This document shows, in pieces, positions 30,776 to 45,087 of a stretch of 64,000 bases of DNA. The position numbers were made by a program, and so were the translations under genes. This DNA is from Selaginella moellendorffii (lineage: Eukaryota; Plantae; Lycopodiophyta). The stretch is from assembly GCF_000143415.4 (NCBI RefSeq), contig NW_003314262.1, forward strand, positions 4,040,021 through 4,104,020, given 5' to 3'. A model generated the notes under the pieces. It searched no databases. It saw only the letters and a program-made list of their open reading frames with translations, and was not told the origin of the DNA. Each line of letters starts with the position of its first letter. The first letter of the stretch is position 1.

Positions 30776-31117
30776 CTGTGGAGGGCCGTGGTGGAAGAAG
30801 AATCATCAGGGCGCTGAGAAGCCGACGAAGAGGGATCGCCTGCCAGGCCAAGGCACCACTAAGTCTTTCCGCTCGCTCAATCGAAGATTACCTGAGGGAA
30901 AGTCCTTGCGCTGCAATGGCGGCGTCGATCTGGCCGCCCTGCGATTGCAGGAGTGCTTGGATTCGACCGCTCGCTTCTTCGTCTCCCTCGCCCGCCCGGA
31001 GCTCCACATTTACTACGCTGCCTAGAACCCTAACGAGATTTTAGCCGATCAAATAAACCCTAAAATCTCATTATTTCGTTACATTTTAGGATCCCAGCAC
31101 GATCGAGCGTCTTCCGA

Positions 31118-31790
31118 TGGCTTCATCTTCCGCGATTCGAGCGTCTTCCAATGGCTTGCAGAAGGTAAGATCCTTGAGAGGTTGCACATCAGATCCTTGT
31201 CCAAGCTCGAGCTAGTTTCTCCATTTAGTATCTTATGCACTCTTGAAGTATGGGGCGATTGTTTTACTGTTGGAGAGTTGGAGTCATATCATAGTCTTTT
31301 CTTGGGAAAATGCCACAATTGGAGTGTCTAAAGCTTTTTCCAAGCTTTTCAGGAGACAAAAGCCAAAAGTCACTATGCATCGTGGAATTTTTCAAGTGCT
31401 TTCCCAGCATCCAAGAGCTGAGGACGAACCTAAACATGTTGTGCATAAGCTTTACACTTTCCTTGATTGCGCATGCCTCACTGGATGGATCTGTTTGTTG
31501 GTGACCAGGTATTCAGGAGCAACGAATACAAGAAGCTCAACCTTGAGAAGCTTGAAGTTTTGGATGTTCGCCTGCTGAATCTCAGCCCTGATGAGAACGA
31601 CGAGTGTGACGATGAGAAAGAAGAAGCTGTCAAGGAGGCAACAAAAGTTTTTCTGGCTGCGGCACCCAACGCGGACTTTCGCTTGACTGTCCCAGGTATT
31701 CCAGTTTTGCATTTTATCATCCCTTTAGAAATGCTCGAACTTGTAACACTCTTGACATTTCTTGCCATCCGAGCACGTTGCTGTTAACTC
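31118..31790 (+). pseudogene. Degenerate LRR/FBD-like gene
   Basis: FFKCFPSIQELRTNL and LEKLEVLDVRL…VFLAAAPNA lie in different frames; paralogous to 43774-44830 and 25640-26080. Confidence 0.6.
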
Positions 31791-31881
31791 GTATCATCCG
31801 GCTCAGATTCAGGAAAGAAAGTGACAGACAAGTTCAACATGCAAGATTGCAAGCAATGGATCCAGGTCTTGTGCTGTCTAA

Positions 31882-34410
31882 GACGAAATCGAACATGAGG
31901 GGCCATGGGATGTATATAGCCAGCCTGGAGTCTAATCCAAGGTGGCAAGAGATTCATGTGGACGCTAAAATGAGTGGGCACAAGATTTGTATATATTTAC
32001 ATGGAGAAAATGACAAAGTGGTAGTTAGGGTATCGGAGTAAACGATGATCTCATGGGCAAAACAAGACCACGCAGCGAGCAGCAAGGCTACACAGACTCT
32101 AGATCGCGTGACTGCTTGACTGCAGCAGAAGAAGAGGAAGGGAAAAATCCGTGTTGTAGAAAAATTCATTCAAGATCAGGGTTGGAGCGTGCTGGAAATT
32201 GTAGAAGAAATGACCAGGAAAAATCCGTGCTGTAGAAAAATTCATTCAAGATCAGGGTTGTAGCGTGTTGGAAATTGTAAAAGAAATGACCACAACTAAG
32301 GCAATACCAATCCCTCTCTTTACAGGCACAGATTTTGAGAGATTTCGTTCTTCTTTCTCCGGGACTGTCCAGGGATAGACCTTAAGTCAGCGGAAGACGA
32401 ATGGCAGGTCAGAGGCAACTTGCACCACCACCACCTGGATATCACGAAGACCATAAAAGAGAATTGGTTGAAGAATGTATTCAGAACCAAGCCAGCCCAG
32501 AGATTTCAAAAGTTGAGTTAAAGTCTAAACTTTTTCACTTAAAAATGGCAGCAAACGAGACTCCAACAGCTTTTTTAGGAAGGCTGAAGTCAGTGCTCTC
32601 CCAGCTGTCAAAGTCTAGGTGAAGTCACCGAGAATGATAAGTGAGCATCTTTGGTTCGCCCAGAATTGAAATCATTGAAGACTATGCTCAAGAACTCGAT
32701 GAAAACCTTCATTGAAATGCAAGTAGTTCTTATCAATGAAGAAGGACCAGCTGAATACCAAACACCCATAGATACAACCACAACCACAGCTTTGTTTGTC
32801 AACTCAAAGCAAATAAAGAATTCTTCGGCAGCACTAGCAGTTTCAAGGCTAGTGTGAGCAACACTGCGAGCAGTTTCAAGGTTAGCAATGTTGGAGATAG
32901 CAACTCACGTGAGTGTAAAGGTGAGTGCAATTATTGTAAGTGGGTTGGACACTACACCAGAGAATGCTGAGACAGGTTAGCCGGGTGTCCTCAAGGATTG
33001 GGGAAAAAGAATATACAAACCAGTCAAAAGCTCTCATGGTAAGAGCTATTCCAGAACCAGTGTTTGTTCAGCAGCAAGATCAAGACGTAATCTCATTGGA
33101 CACAGCAGCAAATATGCACATGACTTGTATAGCATGAGTAGTCATCAATGCAAAGCTTCTCACCTGCTAGTTATGTGCATATTTGATGCTGTGTCCAGCG
33201 AGATTACGTCTTGATCCTGCTGCTGAACAAACACAGGTTCTAGAATAGCTCTTACCATGAGAACTCTTGACTCCTTTGTATATTCTTTCTCCCCAATCCT
33301 CAAGGATGCCCTACTAACCTGTCTCGGCATTCTCAAGCATAGTGTCCAACCCACTTACAATAATTGCACTCACCTTTACGCTCGCATGAGTTGTTGTCTC
33401 CAACATTGCTAGCCTTGAAACTGCTCACAGTGTTGCTCACACCAGCCTGCTGCCAGAAAATTCTTTGTTTGCTTTGAGTTGACAAACAAAGTTGTGGTTG
33501 TGGTTGTATCTGTGGGTGTTTGGTCTTCAGCTGGTTCTTCTTCATTGATAAGAGCTGCTTGCATTTCAATGAAGGTTTTCATTGAGTTCTTGAGCATAGT
33601 CTTCAATGATTTGAATTCTGGGCGAACCAAAGCATTGAGAAGAATTGCTCGCTTATCATTCTTGGTGACTGTTTCACCTAGACTTGACAGCTGGGAGAGC
33701 ACCAACTTCAGCCTTCCTAAAAAAGCTGCTGGAGTCTTGTCCGCTACCATTTTTAAGCCAAAAAGTTTAGACTTTAACTCAACCTTTGAAATCTCTAGGC
33801 TGGCTTGGTTCTAAATACATTCTTCAAGGCTGTCCAATTCTCTTTTGCGGTCTTTGTGATATCCAGGTGGTGGTGGTGCAATTTGCTCAAGCCAATCCCC
33901 ATGGTGGAGACTGCCTTATCATTTCTGACCTGCCATTCGTCTTCATCGCTTGCTGCTACTTAATCTCTGTCCCCTGGACAGCTCGGAGACAGTTGTCCCG
34001 GAGAAAGAGGAATGAAATCTCTTTCACCCAATTCTCAAAATCCATGCCTGTAAAGAAAGGGATTGCTATTGCCTTAGTTGTGGTCATTTCTTCTACAATT
34101 CCAGCACGCTCTAACCCTGATCTTGACTGAATTTTTCTACAGCACGGATTTTTCCATTCCTCTTCTTCTGCTGCAGTCAAGCAGTCATGCGATCTAGAGT
34201 CGTGTAGCCTTGCTGCTCGCTGCGTGGTCTTATTTTGCCCATGAGATCATCGTTTGCTCCAATACCATTACCACTTTATCATTTTCTCCATGTAAATATA
34301 TACAAGTCTTGTGTCCGCTCATTTCAGCGTCCACATGAATCTCTTGCCACCTTGGATTAGACTCCAGGCTGGCTATCTACATCCCATGGCCCCTCATGTT
34401 CGACTTTGTC
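31882..34410. mobile_element. Fold-back inverted repeat of a Ty1/copia gag-protease 5' fragment (arms 31882-33127 and 33167-34410, ~39-nt loop)
   Basis: The arms are reverse complements. They encode IPFFTGMDFENW, KVELKSKLF…FLGRLK…LSQL (gag), CNYCKWVGHY…EC (CCHC knuckle) and ISLDTAANMHMT (protease-like) at the apex. Both arms contain stops. Confidence 0.92.
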
Positions 34411-34653
34411 CCTGGGTACAAAGATCTCCGAATGACAGCTCCGGATTTGTTCGAGATTAAAGAGGTTTCAACTTGAAGAAGTGAAACGTATTTCTCTTCT
34501 ATTTCTCGCTTGATTCCTCAGCTTTCATTGTTGTAGCATAAACATCGATGTCATTTTCTTAACGCTTTGGTGATGGTGACTATAGCGGGGAGGCCCAGCA
34601 GAGCGGCAGAGAGAGCGGCCGAACGAAAGGGGAGGGTTTCGCGCTAAATCCGG

Positions 34654-36021
34654 TTGGCCAGCAAAAGGTCAGATACTTTTGGTTTCTGTGACGATCAAAT
34701 TTGTTATCGTATGGCCAAGGACCTCTTACAGCTCGCTCAGCCACTGCTTGATGTCCAGCCAGGATCATGCAGTGAAAAGTTTGGCGGTGATTCAAAGAGA
34801 ATCAGTAAGGACGTCGCCATGTTTTTGCTCAAGAGGATGGCTTTCCAGATGGAGGTGTCGGGGAATGCCTTCTCTAGCAGGGACGATCCGGCGTGGACAG
34901 AGTTGGGATACAGGCCGATAGTCAGTCACTTCCTCGGGGCATTCACGTCTCTGGCTCTAAAGTTTGGGGAGCGCCTCGAAGAAGAAGAGGAAGAGGAAGA
35001 GCGCTACAATGATCCGCGTGTTGATTCGTTCCAGGATGACAAGAGTGTCGGAGAGTTTGCGAAGTGGTTATCGCTGGAGCTGGCTAACCGGGCTGAAGAG
35101 CAAGGGAACGACGAGGAAGAAGAAGGAGAAAACGAAGTAGAAGACGAGGAAGAAAAGGATGGCGATGGTGGCGAGGGTGACAAAGACGATGAAGAAGATG
35201 AAGATGGTGAAGCTCACAGTGGCCGTGACTTGTCCGAGTACTTTCCTCTAGATGAGCAAGCCAAGAGTTTCACGAACGAAGCAGTCCTCCTCCGGATGTA
35301 TGGACGTGACCACGCCATCAACCAGCACATCACTCTGGGAGTTTTGGGTGGAAGAGGCGCGGATGAATGGCCGGACGATGCCTTCGAGATGTTCTACTAC
35401 GGGTGCGCCGCCGCGATGCGCAACATACGAGCAGGAAGGATGGACAAGATCCCGTGCATAGCCGTTGGACTCAAATGGTGGGCTTCGGGAGAGATCGATC
35501 CGGTGGGCTTCGTCCGGGTCACCGCCAAGTACAAGATCACGAGCTCAAGCGCCGCAGCGTTCAAGTCCCACGTCGAACAGAAGTGCGAGTGTCTGGAGCT
35601 GCGAGGCCAAGGCCGCAGAGCCCGCAAGCTTAGGCGAAAGTATCTCCAAAAGAGCGATGGAGCGCTCATCGCTGCTCTCGAGGCGCGAGTTCGCGCAAGA
35701 ACAGCCGAGGCCGCCATGAATCTCGACGAGAAATCTTTCCAAGAGGTGGAGCATCGCTACAAGTCCAGTGCATTCGCAGCCAAGCCATGCAATCTCCTCG
35801 TGGGAGAGGCCACATATCCGCCCCAATCCTCCACGATGCTGCGGTTTCCACTGGATAGAAACGCAAGGTCTGGCGATGGTGACAAAGACCTGGTGTCGGG
35901 GATGGCAAGGACGCTCTTTGGAGACCGTGTTCTTCGCTGGAGCTTGAGAAGCGTGGGGAAGCTTTCGCGGGAACGCGATCAAGTCACAAGGTTCTTTGCG
36001 AGCTCTCTTGTAGCATCCTAA
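34654..36021 (+). CDS. Intronless lineage-specific protein with acidic insert; distant paralog of the 39035-40718 gene with a degenerate REase-like fold
   Basis: 455-codon frame (first ATG 34711). YGCAAAMRNIRAGRMDKI…WASGEIDPVGFVRV and RTLFGDRVL…FFASSL align with the 39-kb gene. Confidence 0.65.
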   Translation: MASKRSDTFGFCDDQICYRMAKDLLQLAQPLLDVQPGSCSEKFGGDSKRISKDVAMFLLKRMAFQMEVSGNAFSSRDDPAWTELGYRPIVSHFLGAFTSLALKFGERLEEEEEEEERYNDPRVDSFQDDKSVGEFAKWLSLELANRAEEQGNDEEEEGENEVEDEEEKDGDGGEGDKDDEEDEDGEAHSGRDLSEYFPLDEQAKSFTNEAVLLRMYGRDHAINQHITLGVLGGRGADEWPDDAFEMFYYGCAAAMRNIRAGRMDKIPCIAVGLKWWASGEIDPVGFVRVTAKYKITSSSAAAFKSHVEQKCECLELRGQGRRARKLRRKYLQKSDGALIAALEARVRARTAEAAMNLDEKSFQEVEHRYKSSAFAAKPCNLLVGEATYPPQSSTMLRFPLDRNARSGDGDKDLVSGMARTLFGDRVLRWSLRSVGKLSRERDQVTRFFASSLVAS

Positions 36022-36864
36022 AGAACTTCTTCCATCACTTTCTTCGTTTCAAGAGCTCATCTTCCTCCAATCTAAAATACTCGGGTATTTTTCCAGATGC
36101 CCGCACTGGGCATTTTCTTGAAGCGTTTTCGTACGAATATAGACGACGGCGGGAAAAAAACATAAATTCGTGTTCTTGTGGGAAGCTAATCCAAGTGTTT
36201 GCGCAGAGGAGAAGACGAGAAGCTCAATCCCAGTGATTCCAGAGTGCTCGAGCGAGGTTTTCCATGCGAGCGGCCACAACCTGGGTGGAAAAGCTGGAAG
36301 ATCACTATGATCTGAGCTCTTATCGGGGTCCTACAAATGCTCGATCACGTTCTTGTCTCGCTCGCGTCGATCCTCAGAGCTTGCGAAGAAAAACTCAAAT
36401 CCGGAAGAATGCGCGTGTCGTGGGAAGAAAAGTCCTCTATCTGCAAGCGCTTAAGGAAAATTTGAGACTATGATCGATCGTCCTTGGAGCCTCTCGGCGG
36501 AGAAGGTATTCCCATTCCCGCCGCAAGCCATTGTGTGGGTGTATTCTCTTTACCAGTGCATCCCGGCGCACGCAGCATGGATTCAGAGGATTCTTCTTTG
36601 TTGTGGCATTGGCAGTGTTCGCCGGGAATGCTTCCTCCTGGAGGAGAGGAATAAAAACAGGCAGTTTGCTTGGATTTGCTTGGGTGACAAAGATATGTCA
36701 CTTGGGCTTCATTCATGGTGGCAAAGGATAGAGAAGAATGATGCGGAAGTATCGAGCGAGGACTACATGGCGTCTTTCAGCATTTTTAATACAATGCTCT
36801 TGCCGTTACCTTCGGTCTTAGCAAGTAGTGGATATTATGTAAGGATGCTGGCCTGCATTTACCT

Positions 36865-38720
36865 CCATGTTTTTGCTCAAGAGGATGGCTTTACAGATGG
36901 AGGTGTCAGGTAATGTCTTGAGGATCCGGCGCGGACAGTGGGATACCGGCCGATTGTCGGTCACTTGCTTACGGCATTCAGGCTCCAAAGTTTGGGGACC
37001 GCCTCGAAGAAAAAGAAGGAAGAGGAAGAGTTCTACGATTATCCGCGTGTTGATTCGTTCAAGGATGACAAGAGCGTTGGAAAGTTTGCAAAGTGGTTAT
37101 CGGTGGAGCTGGATGATCGAAGTGAAGAGCAAGGAAAGGAGAAGTTTGCAAGAATGTCCAGTGAGAAAACGAAGAAGCAGATGATGAAGAGAAGGATGGT
37201 GATGCTGGCGAGGGTGATTCATGGTTAGTTTTGACCGTTCCAAACACCGACTGGCCGACTGCTTGACTATGGTTATCAACCGGTTGTGAAAATGCCGAAT
37301 GGCTGAACGGTTCGCAAATTTTTTTTGATAAAAAAATTAAATTTTTTTAGTAAAACCACAAACCAAAGCATTAAAACCAAACCAAACCAAAGCATTAGAT
37401 TAAACCAAACTAACTACTACTCATCTTTTTCAACATTTTCAGTAAGTTTTTCGACATTTCTAGCATCTTCCCCAACAATCACATTTTTATTTGAAAGATC
37501 TTCTTCAGCTAAATCTTCTATACCAAGAGATTCAAACCTAACTTGCATTGCTATGAATTGCTAGAATCAAATCTCTGAAATCACTCGAATCGTAATTTCC
37601 ATTTTAGGGCAAAAATTTCAAGCGTCACGGACTGGGTGATTTGATTTGCGAGGCCTCAGTGAGCTGCTCTGCGCTCAATCGAAAGCAGAGGCTGGAGAGT
37701 GTCGCCTTGTAGAGCTTGGTACGCACGCAGCTCCTATAGGCTATAGCCCTCTTCATCAGATTCTATTTAGGCTAGCTAGGCTGGGCATTCGTGGATGGAA
37801 TCCGATGGATGGATCTCTTCATAGCAGCAGGAGAATAGCAAAGCAGTGGAGATGCAGTGGCGATGGCGATAGCCGCAGCAGCATCAAAAATCTAGCGCGA
37901 TCACCATTTTTTTTCCCAAACGGAATCACCGAACGGAACTGTCCAACCGTGTTCGGCTGACCTTGTTCGGCTGACCGCGTTCGGCAGCGGTCGGGATTTC
38001 GGCCGAACGCGGTCAGGTTGGTGACTAAGAAGATGGTGAAGCTCAGTGGCCGTGACTTGTCCGAGTAAGAGTTTCACGAACGAGGGAGTCCTCCTCTGGA
38101 GCAGATCACGAGATCAAGCGCATCAGCGTTCAAGTCCCACGTCGAAAGGAAGTGTGAGTGGCTGGAGATGCAAGGCCAAGGTCGCAGAGCCCGCAAGCTT
38201 CGGCGAGATCTCCAAAAGAGCGATAGAGCGCTCCTGGTGTCGAGGCGCGAGTACGCGCAAGAACAGCCGAGGCCGCCTCTCCCACGACGAGATTGCATGG
38301 CTTCGCTGCAAATGTGCTAGACTTCTACCTCTTGAAAAGATTTCTCGTCAAAATTCATGGCCTCGTACCCACCTCAATCCTCCACGATGCTGCGGGTTTC
38401 CACTGGACATTAACGCGAGGTCTGGCGATGGTGACAAAGTCCTTGTGTCCGGGATGGCAAGGACGCTCTTTGGAGACCGTGTTCTTCGAGAAGCGTGTAT
38501 CTTAAAGAACTTCCATCCTCGTTTCAAAAAGGCATTTAGCCAGGGGCATTTGAAGCGTTTCCGTATACGGCCGGTAATAAGCTCGAGAATCCTGCAGCTC
38601 TCGAAACACCTTGAAGAGCGAATAAAGTGGTCGAGAAACGATGAAGTGTTTTAGCTGGAGCGTGTTTCTGTGTGGAATGCAAGGAAAAGATGGAAGATCA
38701 CTATGATCTGAACTCTATCG
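36865..38720 (+). pseudogene. Decayed tandem copy of the 34654 gene, split by an insertion
   Basis: 36865-37217 matches ~34818-35180; 38029-38720 matches ~35195-36330 with deletions and frameshifts. Confidence 0.88.
37218..38028. mobile_element. ~0.8-kb insertion with clustered ccgaac/gttcgg subterminal repeats (non-autonomous DNA transposon-like, possibly hAT)
   Basis: Absent from the intact paralog at 35180; dense gttcggc repeats at 37930-38020; no clean TIR or TSD seen. Confidence 0.55.
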
Positions 38721-39034
38721 CTGTTCTACAAGCTAAAACAAAGAAAGTGGAAAAGCCCTTAATCGGGGGAGCTGGAATAAAGAATACTCTTGCACACTGA
38801 GCATTAGAGTATTTTGAAGGATCTATATGTTACAAAAATTTGGCGTTTACATGAAGAACGAGCTTTTCCCGCTCTGCCTATATAGACTGCCCAACATATA
38901 TTCTTCAAACTTCGACTTTGCAAAACTACAAGCATCATCCGAGAATTTGTGAAAAGATCACTAAAAAGGAAAACAGGCGTTCCAGAGCATCAAATTTACC
39001 AAGCCATCTGATGCTGAGCGAGCTTTAGAAGTAC

Positions 39035-40718
39035 TCACGCCTGACTCAGAGACCCAGACGTGGACTCAGACCTCTCCTTCTTTACTGTAATCTATATTTC
39101 AGCCTTCAATTAAAAACCAGAAACTAGAATCATACCTGTTGATGGCATCCTGGAATACGTTGCTGACAAAGAAGACGAAAAGTAATCAATAGTCTGCTTA
39201 ATGGAGGCTTCCCGCTTCGCATGATTGTCTTCGATGTCGGCTGATGTTAATGTAAGTGCCCGGTCTCCAATAAACGTGCGGATCAAAGAAGTGAAGAACA
39301 GCAAGCCACCTTCATCGATAGGTTTGTCTGGATTTACAGGAAGGGTCATCTCCTGAAAACATAAACATACATGCATAAACAAGTAGAGCAATTGAAATAC
39401 ATGCTAACCGTGGCACAGAAGTCTAAACTTCCAAGCACATATTCATCGTCTGGAAATTGATTAAGACGGAAATACTGTTCAGAGAGAATCCGTGTGAAAT
39501 CTCTCAACCTGGACTCCAAATCTTCCAAAGATGCCTTCCTCTTGTCTGTAAATCAAATCTGTCAAAATAAATGTAATTTGATTAGTCTAACCTTGAATTG
39601 CCGTGTGAACGTTCAAGATCGTTCCATCTTTAACCGTCACGATACCTTTTGGTCTTAGTACCCCGTAACGCCATCCTATGAAACACAAAACTTAGTTTGT
39701 GTAACCTGAAAGCTCCTCCTTTACCTCCTTTATACCAATGGTGGACGTAAATGGGTCCATATCGCCCCTTTTTCATGTTCAATTTGGCTGCTCGGATAGC
39801 ATAACCAGCACCTTGATCAAGCTTCGTAGGGGTTCCTTTCCAGTCGCACTCGATAATAATCACAGTAACCAGATTGTTTGCTGGATCGAGCAACGTATCG
39901 CGAACCTTTCCCTGAAACAAACCAAAATCAGCACATACTAAGGCTACCAATGTTTTTCTTCCTTGCCTTAAGATCATATCTGTCGAGGCCAACAAAATCA
40001 TTTGGGTCAACCACACGCTCCTGGCCTTCATCCCCTTCGTGTCCAATTTCATCGCTTTCTTGTTCAATAAATTGCACTGCAGAAGTTTCTTCGAAGTCAA
40101 AAGAACAAAACAAAACCAAAAATAACTTACGGTCTTTCAACTGAAGCTGCTCCTTTCCTCCAATAACCACCTGGGAGTCTGTTTCAGAAGATGGCGTCGT
40201 AAGAAGCTTTATATTTTGCAGAATACTGGCGTGTACAATTTGTGTGCCAAGTTCGGTCCTGAACCGCCGGCTAGTTACTGCAACGGGCTCTAGAAGAATA
40301 TCAACCGCTGCCTTGAATGCTGCTTCATCCATCAGCTTTCCATCAGAAACATTATCTGGTGGCATAAACCTCAGCTCCGGAACTTCCCTGATGTCCACAA
40401 ACGGATTGTTTATTTCCAGTAAACGCCTATCATAGCTGCTTTTCTGTAAAAGAACTCTCAAAAACATCTTAGCATGGAAATCGAAACACTCACCTCTGCC
40501 TGAAAAGGGTTGCCGAGATACTTGGCCCGTTTATTTGGTAGATCGTCCCAATCCTCATCTCCCACCTTTCTCTTGGACAGATTCGAAAGCTCTGCTTCCT
40601 TTCGAAGCACACGCTCCCGTAGACTTTCCAGCTCGCGAGATATCTTTTCTGCCTTTCGCTCCTCTGCTTCTTTCTTCCTTGTCTTTGGTACCACGGCCTT
40701 CCTAGCAGCCGCTCGCAT
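39035..40718 (-). CDS. Eight-exon ~440-aa protein with N-terminal coiled coil and PD-(D/E)xK-like nuclease-fold domain
   Basis: Exons 40718-40494, 40443-40131, 40076-39967, 39911-39725, 39675-39592, 39545-39409, 39352-39136 and 39084-39035 splice in frame (one GC-AG intron). Motifs: DEAAFKAAVDILL…LKGKVRDTLL…VIIIECD…DQGAGYAIRAAKLN…GPIY…GGWRYGVL. Confidence 0.7.
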
Positions 40719-41581
40719 CGTGCTACACTTGAGATGAGCAGCAGAAACCAATCGATAACCGGGCCGGTCCAGCCCTCAGAGCAATTGATGATTCTCGAGA
40801 CGCAAAACTACAAACCACCAAAACCCTAATGAGATTTTAGGGTTTAGCTAAACCTCCTTTTCTCAACGCTCTAGGGTCTAATCAAAAGGAAAACATAAGC
40901 AAAATATTCTATTTGTCAATCTGCAGTATAATCCAGATTATAATTAGCATTATTATAATTAGATTATCCAGAGATCAGCAAGGCCTTCGGGTCGGTTTTC
41001 CAAATGATGTCAAAGCCTTCCTTCAGCTTCTTTCCCGTTCGTAAAAATTGTTTCGAAAGTATCTTTGATAATCAAGTGGCAGCCTCACCTGATGGACACA
41101 CATCCATCTCATGACAAGCAAATATTTTCAAGGCAGCAGTATTGCCACAGTGGCTCACACATCTTGTATGCAGATGGGTTCTTCATTTCCCTCTTCTCTT
41201 GTCATGATACAGTCAAGTTTACATTACACTTCTGCTCGTTTGCCAATTTTTTGCGCGAGTATGAAGACTTCATACCTTAACGCGATTAGATTAAGTTAAT
41301 GTTTTAGACAAAAGAGCATCCCCGTGTACGAATTCGATTGCAAAACGAAACGAAAGTTCTAAAGTATTATACACCTTGCATTTTCTCGAGGAGAAGTTTT
41401 ACCTTCGGCCTCTTTCACCGCACAAGGCATGCGACACATACAGTGGACACGAGCCGAGCCGGGAACTAGTTTTTGCCACGTACGGGCCTTATACAGTATA
41501 AATATCTGCCATCTCAAATGTAAAGAAAGTAGTTCATTTGCACAGTTTATTTTTTCCTAGCTAGCTCGCAGCTCAAAAACA

Positions 41582-42314
41582 ATGGCACTCGTCTCAGGCA
41601 GCAGCATCGCAACTCTCTCTTCTTCCTCTCTCATCTCCAACAAGCTCCACCTCCAATCCCAATTGCCCACGAGCTCCAGCTCGCGAAATCTAGTAGTGAG
41701 AGCGTCCTCGAACAAATCCAGGGATGGTGGCGATGGCGGGATCAGTGGCATCCTCGACGACACCAAGAAGGAGGTCACCCGCGAGGAAGTTCTCAAGAAC
41801 CAGGCCGAGAACGAGTCGGAGAAGCGCTCAGTGTTTGGCGCCGTGCCATCGTCCGGATCGCTCTATCCCAGGCCAGAGGTTGAGAGGCGACCAGAGACTG
41901 GCGATCGATCATTCCCCAGCTTGATGGCGTTCGATGGAGCCGGCCCAGAAACGATTAATGGAAGACTGGTAAGAGATTCTTCGCGTTTTTGCAAGCAACT
42001 AACGTGAACTTGACAAGCAGGCAATGATTGGATTGGTGTGGGCATTCGCGGTGGAGCGAATGACGGGACAAACGGTGGCGGAGCAGCTCTACTCGCCGGG
42101 GAGCACTGGTCTTTTCCATTTCTTGGCAGTGGCACAGCTATTCGCGTACGCGTCGCTGGTGCCCATGTTTAAGGGCGAGAGCCCCGACAGTAGATCAATT
42201 GGGCCGTTTAGAGCCATGGCGGAGCGCTGGAACGGGCGAACAGCGATGCTTGGATTCCTTGCTTTGGTGATCACCGAGTTTTTCACCAAGACTCCAGTGT
42301 TCCACATGATGTAA
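41582..42314 (+). CDS. ELIP: Early light-induced protein (ELIP, LHC-like)
   Basis: Transit peptide; AFDGAGPETINGRL-AMIG; AERWNGRTAMLGF; one intron. Confidence 0.9.
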
Positions 42315-43364
42315 ATTTCCCCTCAAAACGTAATTGCCATTCTTTAGCAACTTAAAGCATGTAGTAAAGCCCCCCATGGTTGGACCATGTAAACGTCCGC
42401 CAATGAGAGCAGTAGATCTCAGTTTCAGACTGTCTTCTTGACAATGTAAAAACCAATTATAGTAATCACCAAGACTCCTGATGTCAATTTGTTAATATAG
42501 TGTTGTGTTTAAATCATTCCTGGTCCCAAAACCTTCTCGCACAATTGCTGCTCTTCATGTGGCCAAACTGGTGGCTGCCCCTTGAAAAGAGTAAAGATTC
42601 CATTCTTTTCACCCTGCATCCTCTTCCATTTAGCCTTGGCAAGCTTCTTACCTTCATTTACCTGTGTTATTAGCAAAAGTAAAACCATCATCAGTCCTTA
42701 GAATTCAATTTGGACTAGAGATTCTTTAATGTACTTTGTCAATTCTTATATTTGTGGCTTGGGATTTGCCACTGGTGCCTTCTTGTTGTCATTCGGCTTT
42801 TTCTGCTGCTCCTTCATGTATACTGCAAACAGCATAACATCTTCCTTTTCCTCTGCTCAAGAATCTTTCCCCACAAATTTTTGCTGATCTTGCTCTTCCT
42901 TTGCTGACTCTTCAGCAACTACCAAATGATTCATTGATCCTTTCTAAAGCAATGGGCAATTCTTGGCTCAGTGATCATCAACTACACAACTACAGCATTT
43001 TTCAGATTTTTGGCATAAAACAAATTTTCTATTTCCATAACTTTTTACCAAAAAATTACTCAAATATCCTCACCTGATTGAGAGCTTCTCTTAACTCATA
43101 TCGTCCAGCTTGGAACAAGAGACGTTTCCCATGGCTTCCGAAGTTCGAATGCATCCCTGAGTACGAAGATCTGCCAACGTACAGTAAATGGTGACCTTAT
43201 GGCAGATGTGCTTGTAGCTCTAGATCAATATGGGATTGCTCATCGTCTACATGATCATCATAGGTAAAGTCACTTTTTCTCTCACATCTACTCTCCTTTG
43301 GAACCATTCTTTTTTTGTTCTCGAGCATGTGTTTCACCTTTGTTCCGTCCCCGTGCCTTCCAGG

Positions 43365-44990
43365 TGGTGCCATGCGATCTCATAGTGGGAGAGGCTATAT
43401 ATCTGCCTCAATGCTCCGGTTTTCCACTGGATAGAAACGCAAGGTTCGGCGATGGCGGCAAAGAGGATGGCAAGACCATATTGTGTTGGAGGCCGTGTTC
43501 TTCGCTGGAGCTGAGAAGCGTGGAAAAGCTCTCGCGTGGCCATGGTGAAGCGACAAGAATCTTTGTGAGCTCTCACTTATTTTCTTCGTTTCAAGCTTCG
43601 TGGAAGTTAGGACCCAAAAGACGCATCACCGACATCCCACCTTCCCGGCAGTCCCTAGTGAACGAGAAATATTTCGTTGTGGAGCTCCATGATCTCTTCA
43701 ATCCAGGCCGCCGCTCGCTGGAGCTAAAGCTACCGATAGGCCGCATTGCTCCACAAAGTCTAGGGTTCTTTTGATGGCTCCATCTTCCAGCGCTTATATA
43801 CTCACTCGTAGCAATTCCAGTGGTTTGCAAGCTATGGATATTTCTTGCTTCGAAGAGCCAGAGGTCAGCTCTACCCGGAGTTGAAGCCCCGGTGCGCATG
43901 CTTCCATCTCCTTGAATCATTCTGCAGCCTAGAAGATCTTTCGCTTGGTCAAGGCAGTAATGCGCAACGGCAGCCATCTCTTCATGCCGAGGTAACAAAG
44001 TCTTGATCATGTGGGTCGAGTTTCCAGAAGTACTTCTAGCGCTAGATCTCTGCTTCCTCTCCTTGGAATCTCCACACCTTGAGGTGTTCTCCATCGGCTC
44101 ATTCTTGGCTATTCAATGCAAGGCCCTCCCACGCTTGACGAGGCTCCCGTGATGCAGTTTAGGCTTTCGAATCGACAGGGGCAACGCTTCTGGAGTACTT
44201 GAGATTGCAAATGGTGGACGTCAACCTAGAGTTACACAACCCCAACGTGAACTACTTGGAGCTCCTGAGTTGCAGAGGCCCATGGCACTGATAAATGTGA
44301 GTGGATGACTGGTCACACAGGGTAAGATCCTTGAGAGGGTGCACCTCAATGGCTTGTTCTAGCTAGAGGTGGTTTCTTCTCCGCTTAATTTCTTATGTAA
44401 TCTGGAAGTTCTTTCCTTGGAGAGATGCACGTTTGGAGTGTTTAAAGCTTTCTCCAAGGTTTCAAGAGAATAAAGGCCAGGACTCATTGTGCATTTTGGA
44501 GTTTTTCATGCGCTTACCCAGCATCCGAGAGCTGAGGACGAACCTGAGCATGTAGCGAGTAAGCTTTGCATTGTACTTGATTGATTATTTGATTCATCGG
44601 TGCCTCACTGGATTTTTGTTGGTGATCAGGGATTCAGGAGTGACAAACACAGAAAGCTCAACCTCGAGAAGCTCCAAGTTTTGGACGTCTGGCTGCCATT
44701 TTCCAGCCCAGGCGAGAACAACAAAGAGCAAGAGATGGCAACCAAAGTTCTGCTGGCAGCGGCACCCAACGCGGACTTTCAATTGACTGTCGAGATTTCT
44801 ATAGATCATTCCTTTCGAAACGCTTGAACTTGTATTTCACCGTTCAAGGTGGCCCCGAATGTTCAACGACAAAATCTGCCAACAACAGCTCCGGAAGAGG
44901 TTGAAACGTCAAAAGGTATTTCTCTTCTATCAGGATTCTTCAAAGATATGCTGTTTACTTTTCTTCGTTTCAAGAGCTCATCTCCCAGCT
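43365..44990 (+). pseudogene. Patchwork segmental duplicate of 30.6-36.1 kb (REase-like 3' end, coiled-coil gene fragment, LRR/FBD-like pseudogene)
   Basis: 43365-43590 ≈ 35785-36050; 43600-43752 ≈ 30584-30758; 44322-44833 ≈ 31165-31745; 44885-44930 ≈ 34435-34502; 44957-44983 ≈ 36037-36063. Confidence 0.85.
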
Positions 44991-45087
44991 TAAGATCAAA
45001 GGCTTTGCATTAAGATCGAGAGTTTTACATTTCCAACCGGCTGGAAGGCCTGGCGCTCTACACACAGATACGTACAGTGAATGATCT

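Follow-up and report, generated by a model that had tools for sequence, protein, structure and literature searches.

A convergent pair of probable distant paralogues, one spliced and one intronless, in Selaginella moellendorffii

The 64,000-nucleotide stretch of the Selaginella moellendorffii genome analyzed here (the window; contig NW_003314262.1) carries two convergent genes, an intronless one on the plus strand, here called ORF1, and an eight-exon one on the minus strand, gene 2. Both are real, weakly expressed, lineage-restricted protein genes. The original prediction, made from the sequence, had described them as distant paralogues with a restriction-endonuclease (REase) fold, possibly acting as a nuclease and an inactive decoy or antidote. 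The reading favored here, at a probability of roughly 0.6, is that the two genes are indeed related, gene 2 being the constrained lineage and ORF1 a derived copy, and that their convergence reflects local duplication and not a two-gene system.

Two transcribed genes at a syntenic locus

Window positions 33000-42000 are 100% identical to S. moellendorffii scaffold GL377566.1 (locus L002). The other haplotype of this two-haplotype assembly is represented by scaffold GL377570.1 (L003), where the genes follow one another in the same order. The locus sits among ordinary genes and is syntenic across both haplotypes; transposable-element cargo was considered as an explanation and rejected on these grounds, together with the existence of just two gene-2 loci. 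The second of these, L001, holds the gene-2 paralogue P0005, while loci L004 and L005 hold ORF1-like copies linked to F-box sequences. For gene 2, the database models are P0006 at the window locus, P0004 in the other haplotype and P0005/P0007 for the paralogue, and these database proteins stood in for the spliced gene 2 in searches. The coding parts of the two genes are as follows.

34711..36021, plus strand: ORF1, intronless coding sequence (CDS) of 436 amino acids plus stop, SELMODRAFT_403678 (open reading frame [ORF] listing, ATG, RNA)
40494..40718, minus strand: gene 2 exon 1, basic coiled coil with a bipartite motif resembling a nuclear localization signal (NLS), KRK...KRAK (RNA joint 40443/40494)
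40131..40443, minus strand: gene 2 exon 2, TELG helix matching ORF1 (RNA joints, hhalign match of the N-terminal half)
39967..40076, minus strand: gene 2 exon 3, acidic loop and VDPxxxVxLDRYDLK segment, conserved at the paralogue locus L001
39725..39911, minus strand: gene 2 exon 4, core RD...IIIECDWK...QGAGY, the most constrained exon (against the paralogue, proportion of nonsynonymous differences, pN, 0.09 and of synonymous differences, pS, 0.52)
39592..39675, minus strand: gene 2 exon 5, WRYGVLRPKGIVTV strands (RNA, translation, dN/dS)
39409..39545, minus strand: gene 2 exon 6, helical (RNA, translation)
39136..39352, minus strand: gene 2 exon 7, RTFIGDRAL and YFSSSL matching ORF1 (RNA, profile alignment, translation)
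39035..39084, minus strand: gene 2 exon 8 and stop codon (RNA joint 39084/39136, contig 38941-39084)

Gene 2 runs from 40718 to 39035 and encodes 440 amino acids in eight exons, all in frame. Spliced RNA contigs support every one of its seven introns, and raw reads additionally support five; the eight-exon model of the original prediction is therefore correct and improves on the deposited one. Intron 3 (39966-39912) is of the GC-AG type, and its joint, 39910/39966, is present in an RNA contig and in five raw reads. The GenBank models P0006, P0004, P0005 and P0007 all miss this intron and are mis-spliced, dropping a 15-residue segment of exon 3 that is conserved at the paralogous locus. In P0006 (window 38100-40718, minus strand) exons 5 and 6 are also mis-joined, and in both P0006 and P0004 the predicted protein continues into sequence antisense to an ORF1 pseudogene. 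The 3' untranslated region of gene 2 extends to about 38941 (RNA contig 38941-39084). The analysis thereby amends SELMODRAFT_403679 and 406128, two GenBank models in which the GC-AG intron was missed and the frame runs on into the pseudogene antisense strand.

The mechanical ORF from which ORF1 was predicted (34654-36021, 455 codons) contains a real gene, but not the start that was assumed: position 34654 is a TTG, and the first ATG is at 34711. The CDS from that ATG matches SELMODRAFT_403678/406126, with 94% identity to SELMODRAFT_406126, and is 94-97% identical to P0001. (P0001, P0008 and P0009 are all the ORF1 protein, barring allelic or annotation differences.) ORF1 is transcribed, as seen in sense RNA contigs from two studies (34711-36135 and 34648-35656) and in stranded raw reads that cover it in sense at low depth; no splice from the transcript to upstream exons was seen in the RNA contigs or reads. 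At 35181-35212, a 32-base GA-rich piece of the region encoding an acidic insert piles up RNA reads with foreign flanks, at a contig depth of ~120. These reads derive from another transcript that shares the repeat and are not ORF1 expression.

Neither family has homologues outside S. moellendorffii that could be found by word-indexed homologue searches or an exhaustive HMMER search, and no relatives turned up when viral and metagenome contigs were scanned using the core alignment.

A probable distant relationship and unequal constraint

ORF1 and gene 2 are, in all likelihood, distant paralogues, judging from profile comparison. When the gene-2 family alignment was compared with that of the ORF1 family using hhalign, the C-terminal halves aligned over 156 columns with a score of 36.6 (P 4e-4), a score reached by 0 of 354 column-shuffle controls (mean 15.7, standard deviation [sd] 2.7, maximum 32.3). 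The N-terminal halves alone align at the TELG helix with a score of 22.8, which none of 150 shuffles reached. MAFFT, on its own, brings the two families into a collinear alignment over about 300 positions at 23-25% identity. The issue of multiple comparisons was addressed by scoring all 120 stop-to-stop ORFs of at least 110 amino acids in the window against the gene-2 profile: ORF1 is the best non-self match at 39.0, a 9-sd outlier from 110 decoy ORFs (mean 13.5, sd 2.7, maximum 24.1), and the ORF of its pseudogene copy ties for the next place. The distant paralogy that had been proposed from shared motifs is thus upheld by pairwise profile alignment.

The motifs themselves fared less uniformly. 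They occur in order in both proteins and are jointly above chance, but one pairing and the acidic insert were wrong. In ORF1, TELGYRPIVSHFL should be paired with TELGTQIVHASIL, which lies in exon 2 of gene 2, and not with DEAAFKAAVDILL (the DEAA helix), as had been supposed. The acidic insert of ORF1 was thought to be common to both genes; it is absent from ORF1's own sister copies P0002 and P0003, and so is not a shared ancestral feature but a later low-complexity expansion. ORF1 also has no counterpart of the N-terminal coiled coil of gene 2.

Around the two genes, several pieces of the ORF1 family and of a gene with F-box and leucine-rich repeat (LRR) character can be recognized that the original prediction did not include (the tandem copy at 36865-38490, the fragment at 43298-43774 and the F-box/LRR fragments).

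36865..38490, plus strand: degraded tandem ORF1 copy (pseudogene) between the two genes, with an internal insertion and frame breaks
43298..43774, plus strand: degenerate C-terminal fragment of the ORF1 family (tblastn 46%, ORF listing)
43796..44791, plus strand: F-box/LRR-like fragment homologous to the N-terminal part of P0002/P0003 (tblastn)
31467..31787, plus strand: F-box/LRR-like fragment upstream of ORF1 (tblastn with P0003, ORF listing)
34384-34467: last F-box/LRR-like piece (tblastn with P0003, ORF listing)

The tandem pseudogene shares direct repeats D2-D7 with ORF1 at 85-93% identity, is broken into pieces in tblastn and is partly transcribed (RNA contig 37837-38424). The upstream F-box/LRR pieces correspond in tblastn to residues 211-274 and 305-332 of P0003, and a Copia gag palindrome separates the fragment at 31467..31787 from ORF1. 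P0003 itself (allele P0002), about 45 kb away, combines an F-box-like domain (E 8e-8), an LRR-like region and an ORF1-like module; in both of these annotated fusions (P0002, L004 8001-10400; P0003, L005 8001-10583) the module tails are frameshifted. From these fragments and the structure of the P0003 fusion, the region is a local cluster of [F-box/LRR][module] units of which ORF1 is the one intact member; it is the only intact family copy in the window haplotype. ORF1 and all copies are collinear without introns. The birth and death that had been postulated is evident in the ORF1 lineage, with its several frameshifted or truncated copies.

Selection has acted differently on the two genes. Between haplotypes, gene 2 has a synonymous divergence (dS) of 0.10, a nonsynonymous divergence (dN) of 0.05 and a dN/dS of 0.50, with 8 synonymous and 4 nonsynonymous changes in exons 4-5. 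Against the paralogue at L001, dS is 0.61 and dN/dS 0.26, and in the core exons (pN 0.09-0.12, pS 0.5-0.6) dN/dS falls to about 0.15. With the paralogue used to polarize the changes, the two alleles have accumulated 7 synonymous and 8 nonsynonymous, and 10 synonymous and 16 nonsynonymous, changes; both look constrained. ORF1, with 5 synonymous and 15 nonsynonymous changes relative to its L003 counterpart (dN/dS 0.85), appears to be under almost no constraint between haplotypes. Comparison with older and partly broken copies gives a dN/dS of 0.36-0.60, which implies past constraint and perhaps recent relaxation.

Divergence between the haplotypes is highest over gene 2 (window 38900-45000 versus L003 5967-11827), where DNA identity is 92.3%, dS 0.10 and intron identity 88.8%; the gene-2 flanks are 97-98% identical, and dS for ORF1 is 0.0175. 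Alleles of considerable age, or a history peculiar to this part of the locus, may lie behind the peak. The Copia gag fold-back palindrome (window 31061-34410; L003 14684-16236) lies 5' of ORF1 in the window haplotype and 3' of it, between ORF1 and gene 2, in the other. Since the palindrome is on opposite sides and the tandem pseudogene copy is mostly missing from the L003 haplotype, the ORF1 "alleles" may not be positionally equivalent. Gene 2 also has a small divergent neighbor at 41582-42314 on the plus strand, whose deposited annotation carries a faint chlorophyll a/b-binding (ELIP-like) Pfam mark.

Fold, history and alternative explanations

Is gene 2 a restriction-endonuclease-like protein? 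The motif series on which the PD-(D/E)xK assignment was based is present: a helix with an acidic residue comes first, then RD and, 16 residues further on, E-C-D-W-K at the end of a hydrophobic strand; QGAGY, also encoded by exon 4, starts 12 residues past the Glu in a predicted helix, and a strand hairpin follows. As predicted, ExD replaces ExK. In all 4 database proteins of the gene-2 family the canonical Lys of (D/E)xK is an Asp, with a Lys two residues on. The QxxxY motif reads QGAGY throughout the family, save for QGACY in one haplotype copy, but with its four positions it carries little weight alone. In the helix after motif III, QxxxY is a mark of the RecB family, described for the HsdR subunit of EcoR124I (PMC2475608). 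The hallmark residues of the superfamily are an Asp that opens strand 2 and (D/E)xK in strand 3. The core fold of PD-(D/E)xK proteins is alpha-beta-beta-beta-alpha-beta, and active-site variants and migrated residues are known in the superfamily (PMC3424549). At the aligned places, ORF1 has G-G/A-D-E-W-P instead of E-C-D-W-K and EMFYY instead of QGAGY; the acidic and lysine positions are thus absent, in agreement with the predicted loss of catalytic residues, although the fold to which they would belong is unconfirmed.

The motif series was not matched by the sequence, profile and structure searches, which came back blank or uninformative. In the Atlas feature search, the best named cluster for gene 2 was HSDR_N at 0.87, a sub-threshold language-model lead only, and the 0.76 obtained for ORF1 residues 170-436 is noise. 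Pfam at E values up to 10 gave no domain in either protein (and no F-box domain in ORF1), and PADLOC and sequence and profile searches of the PDB gave no match. An hhalign comparison with a 47-sequence profile of EcoKI-type HsdR N termini scored 15-19 against 12.1 +/- 2.7 for shuffles and was judged noise, this being a test of low power, with one subfamily represented by sequences at 55% identity or more. AlphaFold2 models, made from database proteins that lack 15 residues of exon 3, reached a predicted local distance difference test (pLDDT) score of 39.7 with the family alignment and 37.0 with a merged two-family alignment; in the first of these models the coiled coil of exon 1 was the only confident helix. 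The order of elements around the motif, strand-helix-strand-strand-strand, fits the REase core but is unreliable at a pLDDT of 37-40. Foldseek and VIA-align searches with the second model returned thioredoxins and single helices and were disregarded. On its motif order, gene 2 may have a PD-(D/E)xK fold, but we consider this tentative and somewhat more apt to be wrong than right. If it does, the known nuclease folds would be extended by a lineage-specific plant family whose active site is non-canonical.

How did an intronless gene come to lie beside an intron-rich relative? In the history favored here, ORF1 and gene 2 would share a module of about 300 residues. In gene 2, the basic coiled coil and its NLS-like motif would precede an alpha/beta core, and a helical tail would close the protein. 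Gene 2 may accordingly encode a nuclear protein that binds or cuts nucleic acids. The mRNA of a gene-2-like ancestor would have been retroposed, which would explain the seven introns in gene 2 versus none in ORF1. Having landed behind an F-box/LRR gene, the retrocopy would have diverged fast, losing the acidic and lysine positions and the coiled-coil/NLS head. Copy and F-box/LRR gene would then have been duplicated locally, with most copies now frameshifted and decaying and the convergent arrangement a product of that duplication. ORF1 is thus probably an intronless retrocopy of a gene-2-type parent. Several observations weigh against this account. BLASTP of ORF1 against the gene-2 exon ORFs and P0005/P0006 is not significant (E about 1), and Smith-Waterman comparisons with shuffles give p values of only about 0.01, 0.02 and 0.07 for three separate segments. 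As single-sequence tests are this weak, the homology depends on thin profiles (effective number of sequences, Neff, about 1.2), and shuffling is a lenient null. A search for traces of retroposition at ORF1 turned up neither a poly(A) relic nor a target-site duplication, only a 7-A run at 36152-36165 near the transcript end; presumably, the event is too old for such relics to be expected. No fold was obtained, leaving the mechanism weakly grounded, and the dN/dS of 0.36-0.6 against old copies points to some constraint, such that ORF1 may have its own function.

The similarity could also be due to chance, the two genes being unrelated neighboring orphans. The BLASTP result is compatible with this, as are the hhalign probability of only 27-36% from very shallow profiles and the ORF1 Atlas features, which match nothing. 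Chance nevertheless seems improbable, since matches occur in two distinct regions whose order is kept, each of them outscoring every shuffle, MAFFT independently yields the same collinear alignment, and ORF1 stands 9 sd out among the window ORFs with its pseudogene copy in joint next place. Alternatively, the direction could be reversed: the module might first have been the C-terminal substrate-binding domain of an F-box/LRR protein, leaving ORF1 as a decapitated remnant and gene 2 as a derived copy. The F-box-like and LRR-like regions directly upstream of the module in P0003/P0002, and the collinear relics that precede ORF1, with the Copia gag palindrome breaking into them, would be expected from such an origin. 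However, the module is intronless in every F-box-linked copy and has seven introns in gene 2, and it is in the fused copies that frameshifts occur. Constraint is seen in the gene-2 lineage, which is also represented at a second, unlinked locus, and the RNA shows no splicing of the ORF1 transcript to upstream exons. We regard this direction as unlikely, and equally so its corollary that gene 2 gained its coiled-coil/NLS head and introns secondarily.

A linked conflict or defense system, in which gene 2 would be an active REase-fold nuclease and ORF1 a dead paralogue serving as decoy or antidote, is less probable again. The two genes are convergent neighbors in both haplotypes, ORF1 is without the E/K positions, gene 2 has the HsdR/RecB-like motif series with HSDR_N as its best named Atlas family, and haplotype divergence peaks at gene 2. 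On the other hand, the REase fold was unconfirmed in every test, and every gene-2 copy has Asp where the canonical Lys would be. The pairing, moreover, exists at one locus only: there is no ORF1-like sequence within 10 kb of the gene-2 paralogue P0005, which lies among ordinary genes at L001, and the ORF1-like copies at L004 and L005 are without a gene-2-like neighbor. These unpaired copies, together with the near-neutral recent evolution of ORF1, argue against an obligate nuclease/antidote pair. Slightly more doubtful still is a version in which gene 2 would found a spikemoss branch of HsdR/RecB-like nucleases with an E-x-D-x-K site, and the stripped ORF1 lineage would have been kept as a modulator or shield, which may, for example, work by heterodimerization or by F-box-mediated turnover in the fused copies. 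If this were true, it would constitute a plant-encoded nuclease/regulator conflict module.

Comparison with known systems

Among characterized proteins, the motif order of gene 2 (RD, E-x-D-x-K, QxxxY and hairpin) resembles that of the HsdR N-terminal domain (HSDR_N, PF04313) and of other RecB-family PD-(D/E)xK nucleases. Unlike them, gene 2 has no Pfam, PDB or profile match, has Asp for Lys and carries no partner domain such as a helicase. In Podospora, the Spok meiotic-drive proteins, which act in genetic conflict, have an N-terminal coiled coil and an HsdR-like PD-(D/E)xK domain with QxxxY (PMC6660238). Gene 2 likewise has an N-terminal coiled coil followed by the QxxxY motif series. However, resistance is conferred by a kinase domain within the same Spok protein, and gene 2 has neither a detected sequence relation to Spok nor evidence of drive. 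Effectors of the Crinkler (CR) type with REase domains are mentioned as occurring in land plants too, in an article citing Zhang et al. 2016 (PMC5289972). The likeness here lies in REase-type motifs, a nuclear targeting signal and a lineage-specific, fast-evolving family. By contrast, neither ORF1 nor gene 2 has a Ubl/LxLFLAK header or an NTPase or kinase domain as partner (Pfam gave no match), the N terminus of gene 2 is a coiled coil, and copy number is low and position syntenic.

The locus also invites comparison with retrogene-derived chimeras and local birth-and-death families. ORF1 differs from typical retrogenes in having no preserved poly(A) tract or target-site duplication and only ~25% identity to the parent type. 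What the locus shares with them is that a derived copy without introns neighbors a parent type rich in introns, that this copy is fused to an unrelated F-box/LRR gene or lies next to one, and that decaying copies, both tandem and dispersed, are spread over about 100 kb. The analysis joins two families of "hypothetical proteins" as what would be one very divergent module and describes a birth-and-death cluster of small size, where a copy lacking introns became attached to an F-box/LRR gene. On present evidence, the locus illustrates lineage-specific gene turnover of an ordinary kind.

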